Source of the DNA: Azolla caroliniana
Taxonomy: Eukaryota > Plantae > Polypodiophyta
Assembly: GCA_043228905.1 (NCBI GenBank)
Contig: JBHGNT010000011.1
Location: 17,298,001 to 17,362,000 of the forward strand
Length of the DNA: 64,000 nt
Direction: 5' to 3'
The notes under the pieces were generated by a model. That model searched no databases, was not told where the DNA came from, and saw nothing but the letters and a program-made list of their open reading frames with translations. Shown here in pieces: positions 7,236-49,370 of the stretch; positions within the stretch are counted from its first letter, which is position 1, and the number at the start of each line of letters is the position of its first letter. The position numbers and the translations under genes were made by a program.

Positions 7236-8171
7236 ACCCACCACTTCCCGTTCAGCCCTACACCATGCTTTCGAAAAGGCGGTCATAAAGGGGAGGATAA
7301 TGTCATAGACATGACAATAGTTATGTCAAGATTTGAACTCTTGACCTCGTGTATTATAGTCAAGTGTTATATTGTAACCAACACATCCAAGTACACAATC
7401 GTGTTATATACATTTTCATACATTATTTCACGTTCTAGGAGTTTTTTCTAGAACTAGAAGGTTCTAGAGGGTTCTAGAATATTCTCCAAAATATTCTAAT
7501 GCATGTACTTCAACTCACAATATAAATACTTGTAACCTCCTTGGTCCCTTTCAAGGGATTCAACACCAGTCATTGACACATCAATCTAGTATTCTCGTTT
7601 CGCCTCATCTTTTTCTCCTTGATCTTTATTTTTGTCTTCATGCCCTCATGTTGCTCACAACATCTAGAGTTCCTAGCCTCGTTACATCTAGCTCCAACTT
7701 CATCCATTGCTCGTAGCCCCATCATCTGTGCTCCATCCTAGTCCGCGCTTGGCATGTCTGTGACAGGCGAACTTGAACGAAGCTCAGAGTCGAATGAAGC
7801 CTAGACTCAAATAGAGCTTAGTGTCGAACCCCTCAAAGTTGAGGGGAGCCCAGAGTTGAAGGGAGGAGGAGTCAAAGGGTATAAATTGGTCTGAACCTTC
7901 ACCTTGGAGGTAAACCGCGATTAGTACCCGAGTTTAGAGTGGGGTAGGCAATTAACAAAATGATCAAAATATGGGGCAAACGAATAACACAATAATCACA
8001 ATATTAAGAACCGAAAACAAGATTACGACCGAAGATCCTTATTTAGGGTTATAAAACATTCAATTAATTAAGAGAAACCCTTTATATCTTAGGGCATACA
8101 ACAGTGAAGGCAAACAAATACAACGGTAGCGGTAATGGTAACCACTAATTAAGCAACAAAGAAAGAGATGG

Positions 8172-10726
8172 TGTCGTGGAGAAAACCGCCCCTAGGAGGA
8201 ATTAGGGAAATATGTGCATGAATTGGCCCTTACGTGTGGGCAAGTTATTTAATAACTTGTACATACTTAGGAGCATTTCGGTTGGTGTGAGGATACTAGG
8301 TAGTACGCATTTATTGTTTAGGAAATCGTAGTGTATCTTTGTCTGAAGTGACAAAAATAAAGAGGATGTAACCAGGTATAACGGTCTGTCCTCAGGGCCT
8401 ATAAAAGGGAGGGAAGAAGGCTAAGAGAGATATCGCGTTTTGGGCAAGGACGAGGTGTTGTCAGACTGGGAACCGAGCTCTCTCCTCCACTATCTATCGA
8501 TCATCATTCTCTGCAGGTTTCGGAGTCGGTTGCCTATACTTCGAGGAAAACTGATCGCTCCCGGCAAAGACTCCACTGCGTGTGTCCATGGGCGTGTGAT
8601 TGTTTGGGCTAGGTCTGTCGCCAACTATCCGGTTGTAATATTGCAAGCACTATAATCGTTAATGATTTTGTAATTGAATCTCCCAATTTGTCTATCTATG
8701 TTTCTAGGAGTTTCCCCCCTTTCTCGCTTGTTCAAGTCGGTATACGCATTGGTGGTGTCATTCAGCCGACAAGTGTTGTCGGTTGCAAACAGGTCTAGCA
8801 AGCCTTACGCGTGCACGCTTCTCGCTTCCTCTTGTTTCTCTTGCTCCTCAGTTCAGGGCCCCTGTGGTCCCGCCTTATTTCCCACGTGAAAGCGAAACAA
8901 CACGACATATTTGGTGAACCCAACGTGAATAAGGCGGCAAAGGAGTCGAAGATGAGGGGATCGGAACTCACTGAAGCCATGGCGGCAACAGTCGATCGAA
9001 CAATAAGTGCTCGCTAGGGCACGAGAGCCCTCGATAGGGCCGTTAAAGCAATTGTCGGCACAATAGGCCGGTTCGATGGGAAGGACACCACGAGTTATTT
9101 GGTGGCCTATCGAGCCGAAATGGTGATGAGGGACATCCCAGAGGAAAGGCGTCTAGCTGGGTTCCCTTGGGTGGCAACACTGGGCATCCACTCAGAGGTG
9201 CTTCAGGTGCAGGGTGGATGCCGGACTTGGGGAGAATTTGAAGCACGGCTCCTCGAAAGGTATGGGCTTGATGACGCACTTCGTTTATCGAAGCGGGACT
9301 TCATGGAGTGGGTGGAGACCCCCGGAAAGGGGAGGAACACATCAGCGTTCCTCCGGGAGTTTGAAGAACACTTCGCACGGCTCTCGGTGCTGGACAGAAC
9401 CATGCTAGACACAAGTTGTGTCCTATTGTTTGTCAAAGCGGTGGACGTGCGGGATCGGGATCAAGTGGGTCTCCTACTGGAGACAGATGATGGGTTGATG
9501 ACCAACTGGGCCGCGGTCAAAGGAGTCTGCAACCATTTCAACAAGCGGCGTGAGTGGGGCGATGAGGGATCGTTGGCGGCGAGACCCGTATTGGCAAGGA
9601 AGTTCGATGAACCTTCGCCGGCACGAAAAGAGGATCCCCGGGATTGGCTCGAGACGGGCTCAGTATCAACTGATGCAGTCAAGGGACCATCCGGAGGAGC
9701 GGCTCTTGAGGAGCTGACACAAATGGTGTGCGATCTGCAGATCGGGTAGGCCCGGAGAGATGGTGGAGGGCAGCCACGCGATCAGAGGCCACCAGCTGGA
9801 CAACGGTGTATGTGGTGCGACGCGGTCGGACACAGCCAACGAGACTGCATGGAGTTTGTCGAAGCCCTCAGGGGTAATGTGGTGTACCTATGGAATGGAC
9901 AGGTGCACACTGGTGATACCCGGAGAGCTGTGGAAACGAATTTCGGGCGCGGCGGAATGAAGCGGCTAATGGAAGAAGCGGAGGCGCGCCATGTAGAGGC
10001 CAGGCCGTCCATTATTCAGCATCGGCCAGAATCCGGGTGGGAGATAACCAAGCCTGGAAAGTGAAAGACTCGAGCTTCTAGCCCTTGGTGCTAGAAGGCC
10101 TCTCCAGCGCACGACTGAAGAAGGAAGAAGTGAACCACGCGAAGCAGCGGGTCCGAGAGGTCACTGGATGGGATGATCCGGTTGAGGAGAAGACCGGTTT
10201 CGTGGAAGCCGCGTGCCAGAAATACGAGGTTCTGATAGAAGACAAGCGCACGGGAAAGGCCGAAGGTGTCGGTCCCTCATAACGGTACGAGACCCGGTTC
10301 GGGCAGAAGCAAAACGATGCCGGTAACCCCAACGCACCAGACAAAGTGAAGCGAGCCTGTTACCGGCTGAACATGGAGATTGAGAGGTCAATGGACCTGC
10401 GAAAGGTCCTCGAAGAGCGGATCCTCGATAGCAAGGTGGAGCTGTCACTAAGGGAGGTGCTCGGAATTGCCAAGAAAGAGTTCCACGATTCCATCGTGGA
10501 CTTGGTGAAGCGTAAACGGCTCTCGACGGAGAAGCCGGTGGAGGTGTGAAGACATGGCCCTAGAATACGAGTTGGCGGAGAGCCTCTATTCGAGGTCGCA
10601 CTGGGCCAGAGCCACTACGGAGACCCCTGTTCGGATCGAGGACGTCCAGGAGCCAGTGGTGGCATTGATAGACCACGGCTCGGAGATCAACCTAATGTCC
10701 ATGGACTTCTATAAGAAGGGGAAGTG
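8172..10726 (+). mobile_element. 5' part of a decayed Ty3/Gypsy element: LTR 8172-8907, tRNA-Trp PBS 8912-8930, gag (from ATG about 8979) and aspartic protease, truncated by the copia at 10727
   Basis: LTR ends TGTCGTG...CACGACA. PBS TGGTGAACCCAACGTGAAT. Gag-like RFDGKDTTSYL..Y, CCHC knuckle CMWCDAVGHSQRDC, protease VVALIDHGSEINLMS. In-frame TAG stops and frameshifts are present. Confidence 0.8.
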
Positions 10727-22000: not shown

Positions 22001-23755
22001 ATTCTATTAGCATGTCTCACACTCATGTGTTGTCCTTTGTGACTATAATGTCTAATGAAGGTAAAGGAAATGCTTTAATATTGTGATTTGGCACACAATG
22101 TATGCAATTTAGTTTAGGATACTATACAATGATCTCCGTTGACAAAGAAAAATCCATCTAGAAGTAGTAATTCCCATACAATCTACTCTCTCTCTCTCTC
22201 TCTCGATATGATGATGAAGTTAAATGAATTGATTTAATTAAAAAACAAGCAATGGAAAAATATATACATTAATGTACATTGTTATTCTTTGTTTTTGTGC
22301 CGTGAAGACAAGATCCTTTACAAAAAGTAAGAAGATGACGCTTTTCATCCTTTTGTTTTTATTCCCATTGTGCAAGCTTGTGACACATACGGATCTCTAA
22401 ACATATTATGCTGCATGCTCCAAAAGATCCCATGAAACATGCTTGATCACATGTAGGAAGATTAAAACTTTCTGTGTGTAGATAGATGAAGAAAAAAACT
22501 TGGTACTATTTGAATTACTTATGAAACTAGAGATAGCATTTGAAAGTACACAAATGAGACGAATTCAATAAATGTGTGCGGTGTTAATGAAGAAACTCCA
22601 CACATTACAAATAGAGTCGTGGATGACATGAGGTTGACGGTAATGTGAGATCGCATTGACATAACCAATATTGATGGTGGGTTTGCAAAAGGTGACAAAG
22701 TATGTGACACGCGAGGAAGCACGCATATGCATATCAAATATCACATGCGTATAAAACAAGCCTTGCATATAAAGGTTGAGGTAAGGTTTCACACGAAACT
22801 TTGCATTTGATCACAACATTTCAATTTTGAAAACAAACTCTTCCAGGTAATATGAATTATTTATACATGATGAACATGCGCACATCGTCGCCTTGAGCAT
22901 TTATTTGAACAATCCATTCCATTTGTGACACTTTACATCGAAGTTCCAAAACAAGTTTTAGATCTACGCGAGAACTGTGATCTGTGGAACTTGTGCATAA
23001 CGAGAACTTGACTTGATCGATCGTCTGGAACAAGATTAAAATAGCTCAAATCGAGGTATCTAAGGATTGTGTAAACCGAGTTCCAAGCCAAAACGGGTGT
23101 GTAGCATTGTTGGCATTTTGACTCGAGTATTTGGAGAACTTCAATTTCATGAAACGGGCACTCTTGGGGCGGAAACAATGTTCAAAAGCGTTGGATTTGG
23201 ATGTTGGTTGAGAAAAGCTTGCGTCACATGGATTACCGCAAGAATATTAGGAAGCATCAATGTTGGGTAGGAGGAGACTAATCTATGGGAGGTGTGTGTG
23301 TGAGGCCATGCCATGCCATGTTGATGAGAGAGAAAGAAAGAAATATTAATCTCTTTTAAGAGGTTAAAATGGCCTGTAAGGCCAAACGAGAGAGAGAGAG
23401 AGAGAGAGAGAGATGGGTGATGGAGATCCTTTTCCTAATTTTGAGGTATTAGGGAATGCATCGTAATTGGGATATGGGGAATGCTTTTGTATTTGATGGT
23501 GGGCATGGAGTGAAAGCATATCTATGAAAGTTGAAGGGAGTACTCATGTGACGATTTTAATTATTGGAGCAAGTACAAATTCTTTCTTCAATAGTGGAGT
23601 GTTTGTTCATGTTGCCTATTGGTGATTCAACATGTTCTACTACCCATCATGTAGTGTAGTTAGTGGGGTGACCATACTCTATTGTGACACACATTGTAAA
23701 GGGTGTTTTTCTCACACATTTATTTTAATATAATTGTGAATTTGTGTGTTTTCAC

Positions 23756-23804
<49 letters not shown>

Positions 23805-24620
23805 GGGTGTGTGAGTGTGAGGCCAGCAGCTCAGTTGGTAAGGTTGCCCAATGAAGACCAGGTGGTCATGGGTTCAACCCCTACATTCCACAGTGGCATC
23901 TAGTGGAATTGAGATGAAGTATATAATAGAGAGGTGAGGAAATTAGGTTTCGAACCCAAGACACAGTCACAGTGTTTGTAGTGTTATCGACTTACCACTA
24001 GGGTAAGCTAATTACGATAAAAAGAGAAAGAGAGAGAGTATGTGTGTGTGTGTGTGTGTGTGTAACTCATATAATTGTGTGTGCTTTTACCGAGAGAGAG
24101 AGTGTAAATCATACGGGGACAAAGTTCTCATACAACATAATTGTGAAAATTGCCAAATCAACTTTCCTCTTATCCTACATATTTGTTGATATACTCCAGA
24201 AAGCCCATCAAATAATAAACCATTCCACAAGTTCCAAATATACCACATGCCCAAGTACCTCAAATAATCAAACACAAACTTATACTCTGGGGATGTTAAA
24301 ACTCTATCACCTTCAATGAAAACCTTAGAAGGTTGCCCTTTGCCACATCACTACTTTTGAAGTAGTTTTGATAGCAAGGTTTTTTTTGTATTGTCATGAT
24401 TGTTTTAATATAAACACACATTTACGAAAAAGAAAAGAAGAGAGAGAGAGTGTGTGTGTTTTTTACACACTATTGGGGTGTTCGTCTTGCCTATTGGCAA
24501 TTCAACATGTTTCACTACCCATGTAGTGTAGTTAGTGAGTGACCATACTCCATTGTCACACCCATTGTAAGCAGTGTTTTTTTACACACATTTATTAATA
24601 TAATTGTGTGTTTTCACCAA

Positions 24621-24665
<45 letters not shown>

Positions 24666-24674
24666 TGCCCAGAT

Positions 24675-24749
24675 GGATGTAGCTCAGTTGGTAAGGTTGC
24701 CCAATGGGGAGACTAGGACCAGGGTCATGGGTTCAACCCTTACATTCCA
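24675..24749 (+). ncRNA. tRNA-derived (Ala-like ends) Pol III head, SINE-like or pseudo-tRNA; paralog at about 23821-23890
   Basis: A box TAGCTCAGTTGG, B box GGTTCAACCC, ends GGATGTA...TACATTCCA. The anticodon arm is not canonical. Confidence 0.55.
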
Positions 24750-24803
24750 CAGTGGCATCTAGTGAATTAAAAGAGATATGTATGAAATATATATAATAAA
24801 GAG

Positions 24804-24873
24804 GTGAGGTAACTGGGTTTCGAACCCAAGACACAGTGCTTGTAGTGTAACAACTTACCACTGGGGTAAGGTA
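24804..24873 (-). ncRNA. Second tRNA-like Pol III head on the opposite strand; paralog at about 23931-24005
   Basis: The reverse complement reads TACCCCAGTGGTAAG (A-box-like) ... CTTGGGTTCGAAACCCAG (T-arm/B box with TGGG/CCCA stem). Confidence 0.5.
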
Positions 24874-24939
24874 CTTACGAAAAAGAGAGACACAGAGAGA
24901 TGGATGCGTGCGTGCGTGTGTGTGTGTGTGCGTGTGTGT

Positions 24940-25226
24940 GTGTGTCCGAGAGGCCATGGCATGCCAAGCCAAAAAGACATAGACATATGTGTGTGTGTGT
25001 GAGAGAGAGAGAGATGCCATGCCATTATTTACCACAAAACGGAGAATCATGTGTATATGTGTCTGAGATTGTGCGTGTGTCCGAGAGGCCATGGCATGCC
25101 AAGCCAAAAAGACATAGACAAATATGTGTGTGTGTGAGAGAGAGATGCCATGCCATTATCTACCACAAAATGGAGAATCATGCGTATATGTGTCTGAGAT
25201 TGTGTGTGTGTGTGAGAGGCCATGCC
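24940..25226. repeat. About 135-bp tandem repeat (two copies plus a partial) with embedded GT/GA microsatellites, upstream of the ABCG gene
   Basis: gtgtccgagaggccatggcatgccaagccaaaaagacatagaca...gatgccatgccattat.taccacaaaa.ggagaatcatg occurs twice. Confidence 0.85.
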
Positions 25227-26013
25227 AGCACCACAATCTGCAGTGCTTGGATTGGGGGGGGGGGGGGGGGGGGATATGGAGACCAGTCTTGAAGGTTGAA
25301 TGGGTCAAAGAAAAGATGAGGCAGGGCTATTTTGTTAAAGGGGCGAGACAGACAGACAGACAGACAGAAGCAATGGAAAAAAAGAGCAGGCAGGGGAGGC
25401 GGTTTGGCTCAGTCAACTCTCCTTACTTAAATGGCCCTCCACATCTCACAAAAGCAACAAATCCTTGTATTTGTTTTTACCAAAGTTCCGTCCTTCCTTC
25501 CTTCCTTCCTTCTTCTTCTTCTTCTTGTCGATTTTCATTTTTTTAGATAAGACACAGAAATATTGCTCTGTTTCTCCATCTCTTCACCCATTTCTTGTTT
25601 CCTTCTTTGCTCTCTGTATCAAATTATTCATTAACCATACACACCATGCATGTATGTATGTATGTATGTAGTCTATTCAATATTGTGCCTAGTTTGTAAA
25701 CCCTTCCGAAATTTTGTAAGCTTTTGATCATCTCTCTGTCCCTGTCTGAATGTTACGGTTTTGAAACAGAGCTTTTGCCTTTAGTTTCGCCCATTGATTT
25801 CTCTCCTTTTTCATGCGATTTTCTCAGAGAGGGAAGAGAAAAACAAAGAAGGTTATTGAAATTTCCTGAAGAGATAGAGAGAAAGGGGTTAATTGAATCA
25901 AGCTTAACTCGGCTTTTATCCCAGTCAGTGATTCTCAACACAAATTCGTGGATCTTTGAGAGATAGATAGATAGATAGAAAGAGGGAGTTCATAGTTCTA
26001 TCTATTCATCATC

Positions 26014-29000
26014 ATGATGGACGGGTTTGGCCGGAAGAGTTATCGAAAACTTGGTAAAGATAAGGAAGGAGGAGAAGGGCAAAAGAAGTCAGCTTCAGTT
26101 CAGCTCGGAAATTCTGCATCTGAACGAACTGGCGGCATATCAGTTGGGGGAGCTGAATCTGCACTCACCCGAAGAACACCCCAGTTTGTATCTGCAAGTG
26201 TACGTGCTGGATTAGGCTTAGATCGAGTGGATGAAACAGGGTCATTCGCCTTGGGTAGAGGCCAAGGCCAAGGCCAAGGCCAAAGCCTCAGTTATGGTCA
26301 TGGTCATGGTTACAGTCATGGACAAAATCAAGGTGGCGATGATGAGATGATGGAGGCAGCATCATTGCTGAATGTAGGGTTGAAAGAATGGCGCGAACGG
26401 TCCATAAGCATTGCCATGCAGAGGTCGCGAACAGTTGCAAATTCAGGCCCTGGCGCTGGATTGATGCGGAACCCCACACTTACAAGCCGGAGCCGAGCGG
26501 CCGATAAACTTCGTCAGGCAGTCATAGATGCCACGTCTTCAGTCAAGAATCGGACGCAACTTGTTCTAGGTCAAAACGGTCCCGATCAAGTTGGATCTGT
26601 GCCTACTACTCCGTCCGTCATAGATTTGTCTCCAAAATACTATTCCAACCTTGCACGTGCCCCCCATGCTTCTCTTATCCATGTTGTTATACTTTATCAC
26701 CAAATCTTGTGTCGGAATGGCCTCACAAAAGAAGCCGATCAGATTGCTTCTCTCCTTGAAGGCCTACAAGATGCTGATAATGCTGATGCTGCTGCAGTGG
26801 CAGCTGAACTTCAAGGTATTGATTTGCTTCTCAAAGATGGCCTTCTCAAACTGTACCTGCGCATTCAACCCTACCTTCCTCCTGTCAATAGCCAGGTTTG
26901 CTTTTTCTTTGTCTTTTTTATGACTTTTCTTTGGTTCATCTTCCATTTTTTGCTTGTTTGTTTTGGATGCGGAAGTGTCATTGTGATCAAATTAATTTTC
27001 ATAAGGAAATGGTTCCTTTTGCTTTTCTCACCTAAGATCGAATTAGGTTTCATTCCTTTCCTACTCAAGTCACAGCACCCAAGATATGAAAATTATCAAC
27101 ATTTCCAATTCACAGACCATCTAAGATATGCAATAATTACAACAGCTTTGGAACACAAAATGTCCGGGGGCAAGTTGGTCATTAATGGAATTTGACAAGA
27201 ATAATAAAGAAACTTAAGCTGGAGTTCCATATTATAGAAATCATTAGGCAATTCGTATTAGATAACTGTTTTTTCTGTATCACAAAAGGAAAGAATGAAA
27301 TATTAATGACTTTTAAGAGGTCAAAATGGCCTATGAGACACAATGGGAGATTACACGTGAAAATGTTTTTTTGTCTTTGAGAACAACAAACCAAAATAAA
27401 TATTAACAAATTTGTCGAACTGCATAAGTTATCAGAGAACCTCTCCAGCTAAGCGCTTAAGAAAAAGGCATAGATATAGCACATTGATGTACTCGAAATT
27501 GATTGAAGCATCTCAACCTGTTCTACATCAATAATAATGGCATTTCATGCATCTACACTCCCTTAACAAACACAAGGATTATCCATCACCTTGAGAATGA
27601 CCTAGTTGGTTTGAACCTGGTCTAAAATATCATCACTTCCTCAATTTAGTCCTTGTGTAGTAAGTATAGATGTTTGTAATTCTATAGCATTCAGTGTCTA
27701 TTTTGACACTAAATTAAGCTTTTGATAACTTCTATTTTGCAAACTTTGCTAGATATATGTTCTCCTACATATTTAAAATGACTAGGTATAGCACCTGGGC
27801 TGTTTCCATTCATTTCATTCTCTAAATTATCTTAAGAAATGATCATGGCCAAAACATCAAATTGATTGTGAAAAGACTCAAGAGATTTTATTTTTCAAGG
27901 CACTTTTAAGCCTTTCAAGTATCTGAAGCACATCCAACCTGCAGGAATCTTGAATACCTGACATACTTTAATATGTTGCACCAAGAGAAAATATTGTTCA
28001 TAAGGTCATACTTTTGGAAGCGGAGCATTGTTAGAAGAATATGGGATCTTTTGTAGTCTCTCTGTAGGTTGTACATCCCAATATATGTGTTCGGAATATT
28101 CTCATACATCCGAGAGTCTAATGAAGATGAAATTACGGCCCTTGAAAATTTTATGATGATGATGATCCATGGATTTGATGCTGCAATAGTAGATTTTAAT
28201 TTGAACTAATAGATGAACATATTTTTAGGTAAAAGGAAATGCTCTTGAATAGAACAAATCAAGCTACCATTATTCCACTGTCTTTTCCTTTTCTACTAAT
28301 TGTGCTAGTCTTTTTGAGATTACAGATTGTGAAGTTCAAGTCTTTGACATACTCAGCAAATGTTTTTGTATCAGATGATGCCTATGAAACCATATTAACT
28401 AAAGTAAGTAATGCTACTTAATGTATGAGTATTTTTAAAGCTTGTGATTATTCCTCTTTCACTTCACTAGTGGAGATTTTGTAATATCAGACTTGAACAA
28501 AGACTATTTATTTGCAGTTATTTCACTGTTTAGGGGGGCCTTTCGGGAGAAGGAAAGCACCTCAAAGGATGAAGGTTTTGAAGGATATATCCGGTTATCT
28601 AATGCCTGGGACATTGACCTTGGTTTTAGGTGAGTTACAATATTTCTATATGATCATAAATACGAGTGAAGTGTGTACATGGCATATCCAGCAAGCTGTA
28701 CACCAATATCATATACTAGAATGGGTTTACATGATTTCCTTACAACCAAGAAAATTTGCGTTCTAGTGAAAATGGTCCTCTGAACCTCAAGTTCGTGTAC
28801 TATTTAATTTAGGAAGCTACAATCCTAATGAAGGAAGTATCTATTGAAATGTATCTATTAAGAAGGATTCAATAGCTTTGACTCTGGAACAACATCATAT
28901 GGAGCAACAGTTGGAAAACTCCATGCCAAATGTTTTCTAATATCTAATCTTGTAATGAAAATGGAGGCTTGAAATATGATGACCTAAGTGGTGGCTTTAG

Positions 29001-32000
29001 TTGAAAACGTTTATAGATTGAGGGGACAGTTATAGGAGGCGTGCTTCAAAACTATTAGGTGGAATAAAGTTCTTCATTGGATATAGGCTTCTATTTTAGT
29101 TATGTGTATATGGGGTGCGTATATTCCAAAATTTTCAAATGAATGTCATTCCTAAAACTGCATTTTGTTGTGTTTGCAGGTCCACCAGAGTGTGGAAAAA
29201 GTAGTCTCCACCATGTTCTTTCTGGAAAATTACATGCTGGAGGATCTTATGAAGGCATGATTACATACAACGATGTTCACATGCGCGATACCTCTGTCCA
29301 TCGCTTGGCAGCAATGGTGGACAATATAAATGTCCACTTCCCTCTCCTCACAGTGAGGGAAACACTTGAGTTTGCAAGAGAATGTCTTGTAACCTTCAAA
29401 CCGAAGGATTATGGACCTGAATTACAAGAGATACTGGGAGGAGTATTGAAGACAGGACAAGACCCCGAGGTTGAATTAACTTTGAGCATGATGGGTTTGA
29501 AGCAAGTTGCAAATCGCATTGCCGGCAATGCAGTAATCCCTAGCATTTCGGATGATGAAAGGCACAGGCTAACTGCAGCTGAGATGTTCTCAGGTTCACA
29601 TGCTGTATACTTCTTTGATGAGCTCAACACTGTTGGAGAGGACTTGATCACTTATGATCTTCTCACTTCTATCAGAATTTTAACACGTGTTCGGCAGATA
29701 ACTTTCATGGCTTCACTTTCGCAGCCATCCTCTGAAGTTTATGATTTGTTTGATCGATTAATTCTCCTCAACCAGGGACGCATAGTTTACCAAGGTCCTT
29801 GCCGAGATGCTTTGCCTTATTTTGAAGGCCTTGGGTGAGTTACAATATTACTTAAAACAGAAGCATAATGCTCACTTGTAGATGAAGTTTTGTTGGTGGA
29901 GTGAGAACCTTTGCACATCTCTTAAATGTCATCCAATGTGGACTATGAGATTAGATTGGGTCATTTGATTGACTTGGAACTCTCTTGAACTGGATGAATT
30001 CCAGAGGCTAATTGAGTGAATTCTTAAAGTTTGATGCAATAAATCCCATGTTATCTAGTGGTATTGTGATTAGCATGTTCTTTTTGAAAGAGGCTACTTG
30101 AGGATTATCAATTTTTGTTTTTTGTGATTAAATTTTTTTTATGGCTCGGTCATTCAATGTATATCTTACTGAGATTCTTTAGTTGATTGCACTGGCAGAT
30201 ACAAAAAACCAAGGCATTTAAGTATTGGTGAGTTCTTGCAAGAAGTTACGACAGAAGATGGGGCTGTATATTTACAGCCAGGTTTTAGAAAGCTGAATTT
30301 GGATGAATTTATACTGCTCTATAAAAATTCGGACATGCACCAGGATATTTGCCGAGTTATTGATAGTCAAGGACTACTTCAACAACTGTGGGTACAAGTA
30401 TGTACAAGGCATTCATTCTATATTGGTTCTTTCTTCATTTAGTTAATGATGTGTTGAGGAAGTGGATTGAGTGTTATGTATGCCTTTTTTGGGGGTGGAA
30501 GGGAGGTAGAGAGGGACAAAATAAGTAAATCCCGACTTTTCTATAAATAAGCCTATTTGCGACAAGGGCTAAGATGGATCAGGAGTGCCTATAGGTGGGT
30601 AGGGCATTGTCTGCTAGCAGTAAGTTCAGGATGGAATACTGATACAATGGAGAGGTTTTGGTTATTCATGATCTTCCAATTCTATAAAAAATGTAAGTCA
30701 TAGGTCTCATTGTTCTGAATGTTGTTTTTGGATGTTTACTTGTACCATTCTGTATTCAACAACATCAAACACCACTCCGTTTCAGTGCAAAACTGGAACA
30801 TTGGAAAAGAAACAAGTAGGAAAATGAAAATTGGAAATTGTGAATTTGTCATGGAATCATATATGATAACATTTGTGGTATAGAGAATTTGAGAGGGGAA
30901 AAATCACAAAGTAAAGATCTTGAATGTAGTTTCTATGAAACATTCGTTCAACTTCTACACAAGGTATGTGTGCACTCATTTATTGGAAGCTGGAAATACT
31001 ATGTCTTCAGGGAGAGCAACCACTAGGTGTGGATTTTGTTGAAATTGGTCGCAAGAATGATAGTGGACAGCAATCAAGTTCATATCTCTTATCAAGGTCA
31101 GCTGATAAAGATGGAAGTTTAGTAAATCCTTCCATGGAGCATACTACTACTCCACAAGCTGAGGACAGAGTAATTGCTTATGGTGGCGCAGAGGGGATGC
31201 TTCAATACATTGCTCTTCCTGATTCATCAACACCATTAAAAGAAAACTTATCAAATGCTGTTGCCAATGTTTCCGAACCAGTTCGCTTACAGCTAGAGAG
31301 ACGGTTCACGAAAGTAAGAAACTATTATTGAATTAAATTCGCTCACTGTTATAGTGCTGAAATTGTTTTGCTTTTCATACCTGATGCTTGACAAAAACAA
31401 TATCGTGACATGTCTTTACTTCTTGTACAGCCAAATGCAGATTTCATGAATAAGCATGGAGATTATGTTCTTGGATTGAAATCAGAAACTTTTCTTCTGA
31501 TGAAGCGTGAATTCAATGTCACATGGAGAAACAAATTCGGTCTATATATTAGACTTTCGCAAGTATGTGTATTTTTCTCCTATCATCAGCGTCCTCAAAT
31601 TCACTGAATGGGTGGTAGATAAGGCATTAGCATGGTTTATAGTGTCTATAAAAAGATTATATAATTTTTCTCTCCTGGAAAATAGTAATGCCTTTTTTTT
31701 TACTTCCTTGTTTATTTTAGATTTATATACTAAATGTTTCCTCTTTATTGTTTTGGAAATATGCAGGTAATGATCCTTGCTCTCTTTCTTGGGTTTTTAC
31801 TGTTTAGGGTGAAGCATGATGCTGACCAGCGGAACATGAATCTCTACCGGACTGCCTTCTTTCTTTCTGTCTTGAATATGACCTTATTCAATTTGGGCCA
31901 TCTTCCTGCACTTATGGATGAAAGAAACATATATTACAAGCAACGAGGAGCTCGCTTCTACCGTCCCACATCGTATCTTCTTGGAAAGATTGCTGGGAGT

Positions 32001-35000
32001 TCTTTATTTTCTATCTGTGAGGTGACAGCTTTTACATTAGCTTTTTGCATTTTTTGTGCAAGCATATTTTTACAAGAGCCATATCTGGGGAAGTGAAAGA
32101 GGCATTGATTTGCATTAATTTGTGGATTGATATCTCTTTTCAAAATGAATATGCAAAATTGATAAGTTTAGTGAGGACCATCAAGGTTCTATATTGTGAT
32201 CTGTGTTGAAACATCTTAGCTAAGGGCCTCAGTGCATCTAAAAGAAGTCAGTATTGTATTCTATATCATCCTCCAGTATTCTCTACTACAATGTGCCTAT
32301 TCTAAGGTAACATTTGGGTTATTACTTTTTGCTAACAGAATCATAATAAAGATTAAGATGGAGAGTTTCATCTGGTGTCATTATTCATTTCCTTAATTTG
32401 TCTTTTTGATTATTGTAATAATAGTTTAGGTCTCATAGGTCAGTAGGACTTCTTAGAGACATTAGTTTTCCTTCTTAACTCAGTGTTAAGACACTGCCAT
32501 CTTATGAGTGGGTACTTATGGTGCGGGGTTGTACAATTTTGGGCATGCTCAATGCGTTGGTTTCCAATGCATTTTGGCCTCTTAAAAGACGTTAATATAT
32601 TTCTTTCTTTCTTTCTTTCTTTCTATCCATAGCTAAGTTTTGAGGTACATTTAACTTATTTTATTGCTTGTTTGCTTATTCCTGACAGGGCACAATCTGG
32701 ACTTTTCTAGTTTACTTTCTAACTGGCATGAGTCTTGGAAATGGAGGACGCCACTTCTTTATATACTATGTGATTGTTATTCTGACTGTCTTAAATGGTG
32801 CATCAATGATACGGTTCTTGAGTTTTGCCTTTCCAGATAAAGATAAGGCTGGCTTAGTCATAGGTTAGTGGGATTGATATAAATTTTTCCCCTTCTTTTA
32901 GTTGAGATTATGTAAATGTAAGGATATACTGAAAGTTTCTCTTTCATTTCAGGTGTCTTTGTGACTCTCTTTATTTTATTTAATGGGTTTCTTCTGCCTC
33001 GTTATCAAGTTCCGAGCTACTGGATTTGGGTTTATTACTTAAACCCATTGCAGTGGGCTGTTACTGCACTGGTGGTTAATGAATTTACCTCTCCTGACTA
33101 CGGCCTACCATGTCAAAATGTTTCCAATAAAACATTTATCCCTCAATGTCTGAGGTTTCCAAATGAATCCATTGGCCATGCATGGCTGCTGAATGCTCAG
33201 ATACGCACAGACACTAGGTGGATTGGCCTTTCTGTTATTGTATTGTTTGCGTGGTTAGTGGTTTGGAACATTCTTGCATATTTTTCTATTAGCAAGATCC
33301 AGCATGCCAAGATATTAAAAACGCTCAAAACTTTTCACACTGAGGCAACTACACTCACCTTGTCCCTTGTTTGTAAAGAAAAAGGTTATCAAGGTTTGAT
33401 GTCTAATTGTTGTTGTGTCACTTTCATTACTATTTTTCAGAAAGAAAGTAGCAAGCACTCAGCAAAAGAAGAAGATGTCGAGAATGGAGTGATGCAGCTG
33501 TTTCTTATGCCCATTCCTGTCACTCTATCATGGCATGAATTAAGTTACGATGTGATATTACCTGTCATTAAAAGACCACGCACAATTCTTAACTGTGTTT
33601 CTGGATGGGGTGAACCAAATGATATGGTAGCCATCATCGGAGGCCAAGCAGCTGGAAAAACAACACTACTTAATTGTTTGGCAGGTATAATTTATAGAAA
33701 TCTACCTGATGATGAAATATGTTGAATCAGTACCAATGAAACAAACCAGTGAGCTATATCATATGTTTTGCCTGAAATGTGTGACTGAGCTAGGAGGAGA
33801 GGGCTTTTATTTCTTCCTAGTATGATGCGTGAGTTAATCTTCAAGGCTAGAAGTACAAAATACATGCTAGTAGCATCGTAGAAAAGTTGAAAGTGCATTT
33901 TCCATGAGTGTTTGTAAGTAGGAAGTATTTTATTTTAAACAGATGCTAGGGTAGGCCTCATGCTGGACTTTGTTGCTTCAAAATGCCATAGATCATTGCC
34001 CTTGTTCATGTTGTCTGGCTAATATCTTTCTTGTTGCCACAATACTTGTAAGAATACTTTGAAGGTATATTAAAATACCTTATTGCTTGTTTGAGATATC
34101 ATGCATCCTGAATCTTGTTGCATGTTTCACGTATCATACTTTGACTGTTGTTCTAGCTGCAAATATCTTGAACTTTTTTTGTTGCTGGCACAACACATTA
34201 GAATACTGGAATTTGACTTTTCTCACTGTTGACTACTGAAATGTGGCAAATGCAAGCTAAAAATCTTGGCTCTCTAGCTTCTAACAATTTGTGTTCATGT
34301 CTGCAGGACGCAAAGTGTTAACTGAAAGGATAGGGGGCCAAATATTAATAAATGGTGTTCCAAAGTCACAGTCAACTTTTGGCCGTATCATGGGATATGT
34401 TGATAAGATAGAGGCATATACGCCTTATATGACTGTGAAAGAGACGGTAGCCTACAGTGCAGCCATGCGGCTTGGGAAATCTTGTTATAAACAAAGAAGA
34501 GATCAATATGTTGAAGAGGTAATTGTGAGCATATATTGTGAGTTCCACGTTGTTGTTTCTTTTTTGTATCTTACCACTCTGTTTTGAATGCCATAAAATG
34601 ACATGCTTCACGTTTATCTTTTTGCTCATCAAACTGTTTCAGAAGTTTTAATTTGCCTTTGCTGTTCTTTATATATTGTAAAATGGTGAGGAAACTTTGA
34701 TGAGGTTTTCACATTTTGGTCCTTCCAGGATTTTATGTGATATTGCCATGGTTGAATGTCTGTCTTGTCAAGAGAGCATTAGATGTGTAATCTTTTCTCT
34801 ATTTTTACAAATGGTAGTAGTCTTTCTATCTGATGGTAATGCAGCTTTTACATATGATTCTGATTGTTGAATATTTTACTGGTCCTTCTCTTGTTAGGTT
34901 TATGTATATTATATTATTCACACATAATTGAGAATTACCTCAACAAATAGTCAATGTGGTTAAAATGCACAAAATACAGGTTTATCCATTGGTATCAGTA

Positions 35001-37691
35001 GGGTTGAGACTACACTTAGCCTAAAATTATAGTATCTTACGTCTTAAACTGTGGGTCTTGTAAATTTATCGTACTTCTGAGGGAACGAAAAACCTCTAGT
35101 TTACATTCTCCTACAAATCTTCAGGGAGACATAATCATAGTTGATACCTTAACAAAATGCTATAGGACAACAGGCACTGTACATCACATTATGCTTTTCA
35201 TCTAGTGACTACTTCAAATAGTAGGTCTAACTCAAGTATTTGATCAGGTTTTGGAAGATTTCAGTTATTGTGTGATTCTTTATTCTTGGCTTTTTTTTAT
35301 ATTTGCACATATTTCTTTATTAAATCTTCATTCTTGCAGGTTTTGGAATTGACGGAACTCAAACCATTAGCCAATGCGCTTGTTGTTTCTTTAATAAATG
35401 ATGTAACATTTGATCAAGAGAAGAGACTTGCTATAGCAGCAGAATTAGCTGCAAATCCTAGTGTGCTCTTCTTGGATGATCCAATCAAGGGTCTTGATAG
35501 TCTGAGTGCTCTTCGGATCATTAAATGCCTTCAAGTAAGTGTAGATTTATTATTAACTAACCCACTGTGACGTTTCCGTCCATCTCTTAGCTAATCATGA
35601 GTATATTTTATCCTAACTATTTTCTTTTTAAAGACATTTTTTTTCTGTTACTTGCATTTGAGGAGTTAATATAAGCCATTTGTGTAACCTTTTGTCAGAT
35701 AATACTGTTCTTTTATCTGATTTTATCTGTGCTTATGCAGCAAATAGCAAATACAGGGAGAGTCGTCTTAGTAACACTAAAATATCCTACACAAAGGATA
35801 TTGTCAGTTTTCACGAAGGTGCAGATATTGAAAGGTGGGGAGACTGTATACTTTGGAGAAGCGGGAAAGGACTGTGAGATGATCAAGGTAACTTATATAT
35901 ATGAACTATTACTAACTACTTTATGAGACTCCAAAAACTTTGGAGAAAAGACCAGAATGCCCCCAAAAATCGTAAAAACCTATCAGAATGTAAAAATTTA
36001 AGGACTTTGAAGGTTTTCTTTTAAACGTCGAAGTATTTTGAAGGTTTTCATTTTCCCCCTTAAATATAGTTTAACAATCTACACAATATTTTTAAAACAT
36101 TCTGTTTTGGTACAGAACTACTTTGAGGCCATCCCAGGAACACCTCCATGCCCCCCAAATAAGAGTGTCCCAACTTATGCCATTGACGTGATTGGTTCAC
36201 GCAGTGCATTTAGATCTCCGAAAGATTTTGCATTCGAGTATCGTATCAGTGAACTCGCCCTTCACAATCATGTACAACTTCAGCGTCATTTGCGTGCAAA
36301 AGGTGGAATACAAGTCTTCGATCGTAGTGTTAATATTGTTTCGACTTTTTGGCAAACCTTTATCTCCATCCAAAGGCAATACTGGAGGAATATTAACTAT
36401 AGCTGGGGTAGAATGATTGGCTTTTTGCTTCAGAGCATCATACTAGGATCAGTATTTTACAATATTGATATTCGTACGACCACTGGAATGAACTCTCGTT
36501 CTGGTGCTATCTTTATAAGCTGTGTTTTGGTGGGAATGACAAATGCACAAAATGTGATTCCACAAATGATCCAAGTGAATGCGGCTCAAAAACGAGAACG
36601 TGCAGTGAAACAGGCTCGTGTCTCTTTATACAACATTTCCTATACCCTTGCGGAGGTAGGCCATGCCAAATCCCTCCCCCTTAACTTAATGATGATGGGT
36701 ACTTAATATATATGACAAGTCCTTGCTTGCTTACTAATAGCTAGGTGTGCATTTTCCTTTTTAACGCAGATACCCTATGTGATGGTTGCAAATTTGCTGT
36801 TCTGTAGTATATTTTTACCAATGACAAAAATCTCAGTTGAATCTTCAGGCCAGGTTTTCAAGTACTGGTTCCTCTCGTCGGAGTATTATGTTGTGGTCAC
36901 TTTTGTTGGGATGTTTCTGACTGCTATTTGCAAGATACCTCAGGTAACTAAGAAGCATTTATTATTTGAAATACATGTGTATACATGTACAGATTCATGT
37001 ACCACATTAGCCAAGACCATATTGCATCTACCTATACACATACTTATAAGCTATACCATATACCTCATCCATATCTCTATGGCTTTTGCATATACCATAT
37101 TCTGATACTGCATACATATGGAACAATACATCATACATATATACCAATACCATTTACCCCATATGTCAAACCTATGGCCAAATACTTAAAACTGATGCAT
37201 ATGTGTGTGTTGTAATGCGTTCCCTTGAAGTGTAAGATGACATTATATGATTGTGGCATTCCATACAGATTGCATCTGTGCTGGTACCAATAGTGGTGGG
37301 AATATGGGTAGCAACCGGGGGGCTAGTTGTCCCAAGGAACAGGATTCTGTCCCAATTCCTTGGAATTTACTATACAAATCCATTACAATATGCTCTAGAT
37401 GGTCTTACCTCAATAGCTTTCTACTGCGATGTCAACAAGGCTGCGTGCATGAATAATGGGATGAATGCGGACTGCAAGCTTAACCAAAATGCATGTCCTA
37501 GTTGTGATTGCCCACGGCTCAATGACTCGACGCCAGTCAACACATTTGTGTGGACACAAATCTCTACTAACCGGAGCCTAGACTACAACTGGGTTGGTTA
37601 CGATATGCTCGCGCTTGCAGTTGCTGCTGTTATCATACGTTTTCTCACCTTCTTGGCTGCTAAATATCTCAAACACAACAAACGGACTTAA
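26014..37691 (+). CDS. Atypical full-size ABCG/PDR-type protein (NBD-TMD-NBD-TMD), about 1705 aa. Exons 26014-26895, 28326-28403, 28518-28629, 29180-29834, 30199-30397, 31011-31313, 31431-31562, 31767-32021, 32689-32863, 32953-33344, 33441-33684, 34307-34518, 35340-35534, 35741-35887, 36116-36655, 36770-36943, 37269-37691
   Basis: VLKDISGYLMPGTLTLVLGPPECGKSS, LTVRETLEFA, EVYDLFDRLILLNQGRIVYQGP, FLQEVT, ERNIYYKQR, WIWVYYLNPLQWA, PVTLSWHELSYDV, AGKTTLLNCLAGRK, ELAANPSVLFLD, YFEAIPG, QYWRN. Exon lengths sum to 5118 nt with phase-consistent junctions. Intron 33345-33440 is a tentative GC-AG intron. Confidence 0.88.
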
Positions 37692-39111: not shown

Positions 39112-39680
39112 ATGAAAAGTTCGAAAGAGGAACTATATGAAATGAAAAATCGGATCTTAGAACTCGAAAAGAAAATGTTAAATCTAGAAGTAGAAAAAGA
39201 GATGCTAATGAAGGAAAATGTGGAAATGAAATCTACACTTGACGAAAAGGAAGATGTGATCATGACAAAGAGGAAAGATGTGCTCCGAAGAGAAGCACCA
39301 AAGACCTTAGTACACGAAAATCTTGCAATGAATTCTAACACTACAAATGGCCAAGATGCAAAAGAGCAAAACGAAATTGAAAGAAGAAAGAATAATGTTG
39401 TTATTAGAGGCATGCTAGAGGATGAATCAAAGAATGCACTTTTTCTTGTAGAGAACATTACAAAATTCTTTGAAGATTGTTTTGTGATGCGAGATGTTAC
39501 CGTATATGTTGGACATAATGTTGGTAATAAAAAGGTTAGAAGGAACATTTTGCCAAGCTATTGTTTGTACAATCTTAGATGAACACAAAAGAGGTATCGT
39601 CGTAGATAGTAGTAGGGTGTATCTCAAGGGTAAAAGTTTCTTTATAACGGAGGACTTCAATGAATCTTTTCATCATTGAT
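39112..39680 (+). mobile_element. LINE ORF1-like remnant (coiled coil plus RRM-like region)
   Basis: K/E-rich coiled coil, then ERRKNNVVIRGMLED and, after a frameshift, YLKGKSFFITEDF, typical of non-LTR ORF1. Confidence 0.6.
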
Positions 39681-39681
39681 G

Positions 39682-41120
39682 AAAATGACAACCCTTCGAT
39701 TCATGCTCGGCGTTGTGGCAGCTGAGGATTTGGAGCTTATCCAACTAGATGTCAAAACGGCATTCCTCCATGGTGACCTAGAGGAGGAGATTTATATGGA
39801 GCAACTGAAAGGCTTCGTGGTATCTGGCTAGGAACATCTAGTCTACATACTTAAGAAGAGCCTATACGGCCTAAAACAGACACCCAAAGTGGTACAAGAA
39901 GTTCGACAACGTCATTCAATTGGTCGGTTTCTCAAAGAGCGATGAGGACCACTGCCTCTTCACCAAAATAGCTTGAGATGGATCTCCCTTCTTCCTCATT
40001 ATCTACGTGGACAACATGCTCCTCTCCGATCGGCATGCCAGAGAGCTTGTCGATCTTGTTTGGCAATTGTGGTTGACGTTCACCATGAAGGACCTCGGTC
40101 CGACGAGACACATTCTAGGGATGAAGGTTAGTCAGCTTCAGAATCAACTATAAGTGTTTCTGTTGCAAGCCGACTACGTCGCTCGTGTCCTTGAATGCTT
40201 CAACATGCAATCAGCCAAATATGCTTCAATTCCGCTCCAAATCAGTCTTCGGTAGTCTAAGTGAGACTACATGATAGCTAGTCCAGAGGGGGAAGATATG
40301 AAGTCGGTACCGTATGCACCGACAATCATTTATGGCTCAGTCGACTGGCGCACACGTTTCAACAAGTCGACTCCGACTTGGCCCCAATTGTCTATAGTGA
40401 CAGTTAGGATGTTGTCGCTTTGTCGAGAAATCCGGTCCATCACAACGCCTCGAAGCACATCGATGTGAGATATCACTTTGTTCGAGACTGCATCATTTCA
40501 GGGAAAATCGGCCCCAAGAAGATATCTACAACTAATAATGTTGCAGATGGGATGGCCAAGTGTCTTCCGACAGACCGATTCCGGTCTCTTAGGCACTAGA
40601 TGGGCGATTGAGTCAGACACCCAAGTCATGCTTCAGACATTTGATGACTCAACTTCAGTCTTTCAGACCCTAGCCAACCTGGATATTTCCAATTCGGACA
40701 AGGCCGATCTTTTGACAACCTCTGTATAAATATGTATTCCTTTGTTTACTCCTTTTTCGTTACAATTTTTTTTGTTGTATACACCCATTACAGGGGAGTG
40801 TTGAATATGGGTGTATAATGGTCATATTCACATTGTCCCTTTGGATAGACTAGGTTTAGGAAAATAATATAAATATGTCAAAGGGCAGTTGCCCTAGCCC
40901 AATTATTATATAACAGACTTTGTAACCTAGTTCATGATGATGTTGATAGTGCCAATCTTGTATAATTGTAACTTTTGTAATAAGATTGTTACATTATGAG
41001 CCTCTTTGTCTCTCTCTCTTTCACCCTGTCTTCTTGATATTGCTTTAACATCTTAACTTGGTGATCTTCTTAACATAGATGTTGTTCTTATTTCTGCATT
41101 GACGGTCTCAGACTCCAATA
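39682..41120 (+). mobile_element. Decayed 3' half (RT-RH, PPT, 3' LTR about 40799-41120) of a copia related to the intact element at 10727-16191
   Basis: Nucleotide similarity from aaaatgacaacc (cf. about 14399) through gaggggaagatatgaagtcggtaccgtatgcacc. Internal deletion, many stops, PPT caggggag and LTR start tgttgaata..gtgtataatgg..tattcaca. Confidence 0.88.

Positions 41121-42378: not shown

Positions 42379-49370
<6,992 letters not shown>

Follow-up and report, generated by a model that had tools for sequence, protein, structure and literature searches.

A full-size ABCG gene with a PDZ-like insert

The 64-kb stretch of the Azolla caroliniana genome analyzed here (contig JBHGNT010000011.1, positions 17,298,001 to 17,362,000; the window) carries on its forward strand, at approximately 26014 to 37691, a gene for a full-size PDR-type ABCG protein, in which a 303-nucleotide (nt) exon probably encodes most of a PDZ-like domain. 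The gene and its approximate span were recognized from Pfam matches on exon open reading frames (ORFs) and from full-length homologues. It is laid out as an N-terminal extension, a first nucleotide-binding domain (NBD1), the PDZ-like insert, a first transmembrane domain (TMD1), NBD2, and TMD2. In exon-wise Pfam searches, ABC_tran and ABC2_membrane matched separate exon ORFs in the order NBD-TMD-NBD-TMD, which is the reverse topology of full-size ABCGs.

The exon (31011 to 31313, 101 codons) would encode the two helices of the domain and all but one of its six strands (beta-B to beta-F). The remaining strand, beta-A, would be supplied by the last nine codons of the upstream exon (G-L-L-Q-Q-L-W-V-Q, 30371 to 30397), which align with the strand at residues 8 to 16 in a structure model of residues 390 to 490 of a homologue, P0010 (see below). 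The upstream exon itself (30199 to 30397; RNA joints 29833/30198, with the cut moved by +1, and 30397/31011) encodes the end of NBD1 and the linker. A 613-nt intron (30398 to 31010) separates beta-A from beta-B, and a 117-nt intron (31314 to 31430), placed by RNA joints and sequence, is followed by an exon of 132 nt (31431 to 31562) that leads into TMD1. Both introns have GT..AG ends, with the acceptor cttcag/GGAGAG at 31011 and the donor ACGAAA/gtaaga after 31313. Both are in phase 0, because the neighboring exons stop and start at whole codons (TGG GTA CAA/gtatgt at 30397 and CCA AAT at 31431). The exon sequence and its symmetric phases are as given in a preliminary description of this locus.

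Expression and constraint of the exon

Spliced contigs from public runs were placed on positions 28400 to 33800. The joints 30397 to 31011 and 31313 to 31431, both GT..AG, are present in contigs of four runs from four studies (one of the four runs is recorded as RNA), and the 613-nt intron is spliced out in the contigs of all four. No joint that skips the exon is among the listed contig joints, although contigs may miss rare isoforms. The exon is real and is included in the mature mRNA, as had been supposed, and the domain is probably a constitutive part of the ABCG.

Exon and introns could be compared with those of a close relative (L001, about 92% DNA identity), represented by a metagenome contig that spans 30230 to 31960. 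The exon is 96.4% identical to this relative with no gap columns, while the introns at 30398 to 31010, 31314 to 31430, and 31563 to 31766 are 87.5%, 93.2%, and 84.8% identical with 31, 1, and 11 gap columns, respectively. Of the ten codons of the exon that differ, six encode the same residue in both organisms, and the other four carry conservative replacements (R/K, A/S, Q/H, and N/S). The neighboring exons show 97.7 to 98.2% identity, and the protein encoded by the 132-nt exon is identical in the two organisms. The exon is under purifying selection, which is slightly weaker than that on the adjacent exons.

Homologues of the inserted segment

In a phmmer search of 1.84 billion representative sequences, the 101 exon residues retrieved only one long protein, P0010, from Mesotaenium endlicherianum, along with a nearly identical fragment and several others that each cover a single exon (E values of 1.9e-8 for P0003, 8.4e-7 for P0005, and 2.2e-4 for P0010). 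A search with P0010 led to full-length relatives, namely, a Mesotaenium paralogue (P0034), two transcript-derived proteins (P0035 and P0036), and proteins from Adiantum nelumboides (P0037), Riccia fluitans (P0038), and a moss-like metagenome (P0039). All of them have the PDZ-like segment at the same place, after NBD1 and before TMD1. About 25 further fragments came from a profile search, and many of these contain a literal P-L-G-L-G-F; the moss members are among those that do. Furthermore, two genomic loci of moss-like organisms contain an ABC_tran ORF, an ORF of the domain, and then ABC2_membrane ORFs. The NBD-PDZ-TMD architecture that the preliminary description proposed to look for in other plants is present in Mesotaenium, Riccia, Adiantum, the moss-like proteins, and these two loci. 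A word-based search with the Mesotaenium domain region matched only itself.

The homology of the exon to this family is secure, because the exon matches, from end to end and at 90.4 bits, a family profile from which it and its closest kin were omitted; a profile of three algal sequences alone gives 34.9 bits. On these grounds, the window exon is assigned to the PDZ-like family by homology. The nearest named homologue, that of Adiantum, is about 50% identical within the domain.

When aligned with oomycete PDR-type ABCGs, the PDZ-bearing clade shows an insert of 90 to 110 residues exactly at the site of the exon. According to the preliminary description, PDR proteins have only a short linker at this place. 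The insert begins about nine codons 5' of the exon, so that the exon represents most of the insert and not the whole. In P0010, the PDZ-like segment and the linker that follows it are repeated near-identically (residues of about 405 to 531 and 532 to 658), owing either to the duplication of exons in tandem or to an artifact of annotation or assembly. No second copy of the PDZ-like domain was found within the 64-kb window.

Predicted fold of the domain

The AlphaFold2 model of P0010 residues 390 to 490, built from a 34-sequence alignment that includes the window exon, is confident (predicted local distance difference test [pLDDT] of 85; predicted template modeling score [pTM] of 0.75), and its elements follow in PDZ order: beta-A, beta-B, beta-C, a short alpha-A, beta-D, beta-E, alpha-B, and beta-F. 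All of the 50 top Foldseek matches of this model in the PDB are PDZ domains (template modeling [TM] scores up to 0.73). In a VIA-align search of 48,161 representative chains, which is independent of Foldseek, the 50 top matches are again PDZ domains (Z up to 11.9, with 112 chains at Z ≥ 8), and the best of them superimpose with a root mean square deviation (rmsd) of 1.3 to 1.6 Å over 77 to 81 residues. In the ESM Atlas shape search, 7 of 10 rows are named PDZ. When family profiles were compared with PDB sequences, the PDZ domains of PDLIM2 and LIMK2 ranked first (E of 0.003 to 0.05), and Pfam PDZ_6 weakly matches two family members (best score, 16.1 bits; best E, 0.003, on a trimmed segment). 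Given the confident P0010 model and these structure and profile searches, the family domain is, as modeled, a divergent PDZ domain whose topology is the canonical one and not a circular permutation.

The family model has the same fold and strand order as canonical PDZ domains such as those of PDLIM2, SHANK1, RGS3, NHERF1 (PDZ1), and PSD-95 (Z of 11 to 12; rmsd of 1.3 to 2.8 Å over 77 to 87 residues). Likewise, the family has an x-Phi-G-Phi loop before beta-B and a G-D-x-V-V-A strand, and P-L-R-L-Q-L-D-R of PDLIM2 aligns to its last strand. It differs from canonical PDZ domains in that its similarity falls below Pfam cutoffs, in an extra conserved S-M-x-H-T between alpha-A and beta-D, and in a long beta-B/beta-C loop in the land plant members. 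Moreover, canonical PDZ domains occur in soluble scaffolds, whereas the family domain is inserted within a membrane transporter-type protein.

With conservation mapped on the P0010 model, the window copy retains every near-invariant family position except G52. P-L-G-V (31020 to 31031) corresponds to the loop with which PDZ domains bind carboxylates (x-Phi-G-Phi, “GLGF”), of which all four residues are kept; the family has an invariant P, a G conserved at 95%, and L, V, or I as the last residue, which opens strand beta-B in the P0010 model. The F of beta-B is kept as well. The Ser/Gln-rich, low-complexity loop between beta-B and beta-C (G-R-K-N-D-S-G-Q-Q-S-S-S, 31047 to 31082; pLDDT below 50 in a model of the exon alone) is absent from algal members. 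Also kept are G-S-L at alpha-A and the family-specific motif between alpha-A and beta-D (S-M-E-H-T, 31131 to 31145). E-D-R-V-I-A-Y-G-G (31161 to 31187) corresponds to strand beta-D of PDZ domains (G-D-x-I-L-x-V-N-G) and keeps D-x-V-I-A and G-G, including the D and A that are 98% and 97% conserved in the family. The L and Y of beta-E, the L of the predicted helix alpha-B (P-L-K-E-N-L-S-N-A-V-A, 31233 to 31265), and the entire R-L-Q-L-E-R of beta-F (V-R-L-Q-L-E-R, 31281 to 31301), the most conserved stretch of the family, complete the set. Of the PDZ hallmarks named in the preliminary description, the P-L-G-V loop and the last strand are present as stated, and the G-D-x-I-x-A-x-N-G motif differs in detail, reading E-D-R-V-I-A-Y-G-G in the window.

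Several findings weigh against a PDZ fold in the Azolla caroliniana copy. (i) No family member reaches the Pfam PDZ cutoff (PF00595/PF13180/PF17820; at best 16.1 versus 27 bits), and the exon peptide alone matches nothing in Pfam at E ≤ 10. (ii) The AlphaFold2 model of the exon alone is poor (pLDDT of 50.7), and neither Foldseek nor VIA-align gave a significant structural match for it. (iii) By ESM Atlas features, recognition of the exon does not reach the mark, and all leads are either hypothetical or beta-propeller. (iv) The window copy has E at G52, a more polar beta-C (S-R-S-A, compared with G-V-I or S-I-V in its kin), and no basic residue ahead of the P-L-G-V loop. However, the exon-alone model lacks beta-A and is based on only 11 sequences, so that low confidence is to be expected; the window sequence was analyzed exon by exon throughout. 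Its elements (four strands, a helix, and a strand, corresponding to beta-B, beta-C, beta-D, beta-E, alpha-B, and beta-F) nevertheless follow in the same order as in the family model. A two-chain structure prediction of the exon peptide with the upstream-exon peptide, in which alignments were not used, scored 0.00 and counts neither for nor against complementation of the domain by beta-A. Although the PDZ fold that had been proposed for the exon is predicted for a homologue and not for the exon by itself, homology to the modeled family makes it likely that the Azolla caroliniana copy also forms a PDZ-like folded domain.

Age and origin of the fusion

The family extends over a zygnematophyte alga, a liverwort, mosses, and ferns, and no seed plant member was matched in the family sequence searches. 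The ABCG-PDZ fusion is ancient, older than the divergence of land plants from zygnematophyte algae, and a recent origin is not supported. The domain appears to have been retained since before that divergence at the same place, the presumably cytosolic linker that leads from NBD1 to the beginning of TMD1 in an early-diverged PDR-type full-size ABCG. The clade, found from zygnematophyte algae to ferns, was probably lost in most seed plants. Its range fits that reported for the early-diverged “V1-Type” full-size ABCGs, which occur in charophytes, mosses, Selaginella, and Amborella but in no other angiosperms (Cho et al. 2020, PMC8359288); the two are likened here by range, not by sequence. PDZ is mentioned nowhere in that paper.

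The exon structure lends no real support to the suggestion that shuffling of an exon brought in a complete domain. The exon is not a complete domain, because strand beta-A is encoded upstream at 30371 to 30397. Furthermore, the 5' intron lies at the same position in one moss-like lineage (L007) and is absent in another (L005), and the neighboring exons of 132 and 255 nt are likewise in phase 0/0. The borders of the domain do not coincide with same-phase introns common to all carriers. In L005, the upstream and PDZ exons are fused (7866 to 8540), whereas the corresponding region of L007 (7989 to 8381) has the intron; an intron was lost or gained within the clade.

Degenerate ATPase motifs in the clade

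The PDZ-bearing clade shares with PDR-type ABCGs (fungal Pdr5/Cdr1, oomycete, and plant proteins) the NBD-TMD-NBD-TMD order, the ABC_tran and ABC2_membrane domains, and, in relatives of the window protein, a PDR_assoc match. The closest solved structures to P0036 to P0038 are those of fungal Cdr1 and Pdr5 (E of about 1e-104 for the fern protein P0036). In addition to the insert, the clade differs from PDR-type ABCGs in its long N-terminal extension and in a degenerate NBD1 signature, NBD2 Q-loop, H-loop, and, often, Walker B. In the window, the extension comprises about 300 residues (26014 to 26920), is partly Gly/Gln/His-rich, and has no Pfam match; its distal part (H-A-S-L-I..L-L-L-K-D-G-L-L) is conserved as far as the algal homologues.

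Comparison of the window protein and P0034 to P0038 with oomycete PDRs shows degenerate ATPase motifs across the whole clade. The motif-bearing segments of the window are located at 29182 to 29832, 33441 to 33683, 34306 to 34530, 35340 to 35540, and 35729 to 35890. The S-G-G of the NBD1 signature is replaced by S/T-D/E-D/N in the clade (S-D-D in the window), and the Q of the NBD2 Q-loop is replaced by K, P, or R (K in the window). The H of the NBD2 H-loop is lost in all members but one (K in the window). The E of the NBD2 Walker B motif is replaced by D, N, or G in the window (D), the ferns, and P0035, and the K of the NBD2 Walker A motif is lost in three members. Judged by sequence, the site composed of the NBD2 Walker A and B motifs, Q-loop, and H-loop together with the NBD1 signature does not have the residues of a competent ATP site. 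The pattern across members indicates that the degeneracy is old in the clade.

Possible functions of the domain

The PDZ-like domain may serve as a built-in docking module that would take up a short peptide in a groove formed by beta-B and alpha-B, with the P-L-G-Phi loop at its head. The peptide might be the tail of a partner protein, an internal strand, or another part of the ABCG itself, and its binding could tether or regulate the protein, in which the motifs for ATP hydrolysis are degenerate. Conservation of the P-L-G-Phi loop and beta-B, where PDZ domains classically hold their ligands, favors this prediction, but we hold it only tentatively, as less likely than not. The C-terminal tails of the proteins themselves end in K-R-T, R-K-T, H-N-K, or R-K-V and are not typical PDZ ligands, which counts against it; since these endings are basic or polar, we rejected the protein's own tail as the likeliest ligand.

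A second explanation, only slightly less likely, is that the PDZ fold has been kept without an outside ligand and plays a structural or regulatory part inside the protein, where it packs on NBD1, NBD2, or the linker and might hold or gate NBDs that no longer hydrolyze ATP normally. Such an internal interface is suggested by the location of the strongest conservation, which falls on beta-F, including its exposed residues (R, Q, E, and R), and on S-M-x-H-T, outside the classical peptide groove. The clade-wide degeneracy of the ATPase motifs fits it, too. In PDZ domains, the two termini are near each other, a favorable arrangement for a domain that is inserted into another protein. Yet the P-L-G-Phi loop and the F of beta-B are also highly conserved, and these belong to the classical ligand site on which the docking prediction is based.

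It is improbable that the segment has decayed in Azolla caroliniana to a PDZ-like remnant, a flexible and partly disordered linker that is perhaps a phosphorylation target. The poor exon-alone model, in which residues 1 to 16 and 20 to 45 fall below a pLDDT of 50, would agree with decay, as would the Ser/Gln-rich loop, the lost hydrophobic residues of beta-C, the change of G52 to E, the lack of a Pfam match, and the low ESM Atlas recognition. On the other hand, a decayed linker is at odds with purifying selection on an exon that has no indels between introns that have many, with the conservation of the other near-invariant positions, and with the 90-bit match to the family profile, and the model would be of low confidence in any case for the reasons given above.

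A Kelch or beta-propeller-like blade in place of a PDZ domain is very improbable. Speaking for it are bacterial Kelch-repeat proteins, matched by phmmer with E values from 1.6e-4 to 9e-4 via a motif of the type S-M-x-H-T-x-x-V-x-x-G-D-x-V-V-A-V-G-G; the Pfam families Kelch_4 and Kelch_6, matched at E of 0.05 to 0.15; and WD40 and propeller clusters at 0.88 to 0.89 by ESM Atlas features. However, only about 35 residues are matched, the segment occurs just once in the gene and nowhere else in the window, a lone blade cannot fold, and the confident P0010 model and both structure searches give PDZ only. The S-M-x-H-T motif is the source of the weak Kelch-like matches. Exon residues 35 to 59, like segments of P0008, P0013, and P0014, contain a 25- to 35-residue motif of the form G-S-L-x-x-x-S-M-x-H-T-x-x-x-x-x-x-D-x-V-x-A-x-G-G that resembles a bacterial Kelch blade (whole-library E of about 1e-4). 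We read this resemblance as motif-level convergence.

A role other than that of a pump is plausible for a protein with a PDZ insert and degenerate ATPase motifs. The preliminary description had considered a membrane scaffold or signaling system, an idea with which the clade-wide degeneracy of the motifs would be compatible. It is conceivable, if doubtful, that an ancient streptophyte ABCG clade gave up normal ATP hydrolysis and, with a built-in PDZ domain, became a receptor, a scaffold, or a regulated channel-like device and not a pump. Eroded ATP-hydrolysis motifs, combined with retention under selection for hundreds of millions of years, point to a role of this ABCG other than pumping, which is directly testable through orthologues in Marchantia or Physcomitrium.

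Comparison with known PDZ-ABC systems

PDZ domains are coupled to ABC proteins at the membrane in the pairing of CFTR with NHERF1 and, for human ABCG2, in a context that involves PDZK1. To our knowledge, coupling to ABC proteins such as CFTR occurs only via separate scaffold proteins. In those systems, the PDZ domain on the scaffold binds the C-terminal tail of the transporter, whereas here the PDZ-like domain lies within the ABC polypeptide, at the hinge of its nucleotide-binding and membrane parts. Our literature searches on PDZ domains in full-size or plant ABCGs found no ABCG-PDZ fusion described, in agreement with the earlier statement that none is known; one of them brought up pairings with separate PDZ proteins. 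If the assignment is true, this would be the first ABC protein with a PDZ module of its own. Canonical PDZ domains are scarce in plants, and the domain would be one of the rare examples. The one database trace noted is a precomputed PDZ_6 match on the Mesotaenium protein, although other databases, such as structure-based InterPro members, could already flag the domain; standard domain annotation overlooks it in all land plant members examined.

Other features of the gene and the window

Within the ABCG gene, a 96-nt intron at 33345 to 33440 is listed with AG..TC ends, which become GC..AG if the cut is moved by 2, as the joint permits; this intron is in frame within a long stop-free ORF. The region 5' of the gene (23700 to 25300) is dense in GA/CT and CA/GT microsatellite-like tracts, and its ORF translations are rich in R-E-R-E, T-H-T-H, and C-V-C-V runs. 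Downstream, ORF translations point to a copia-type reverse transcriptase-like fragment at 39676 to 40600 and, at 42379 to 47000, to what appears to be a multiexon gene for a 5'-3' exoribonuclease (XRN-like).

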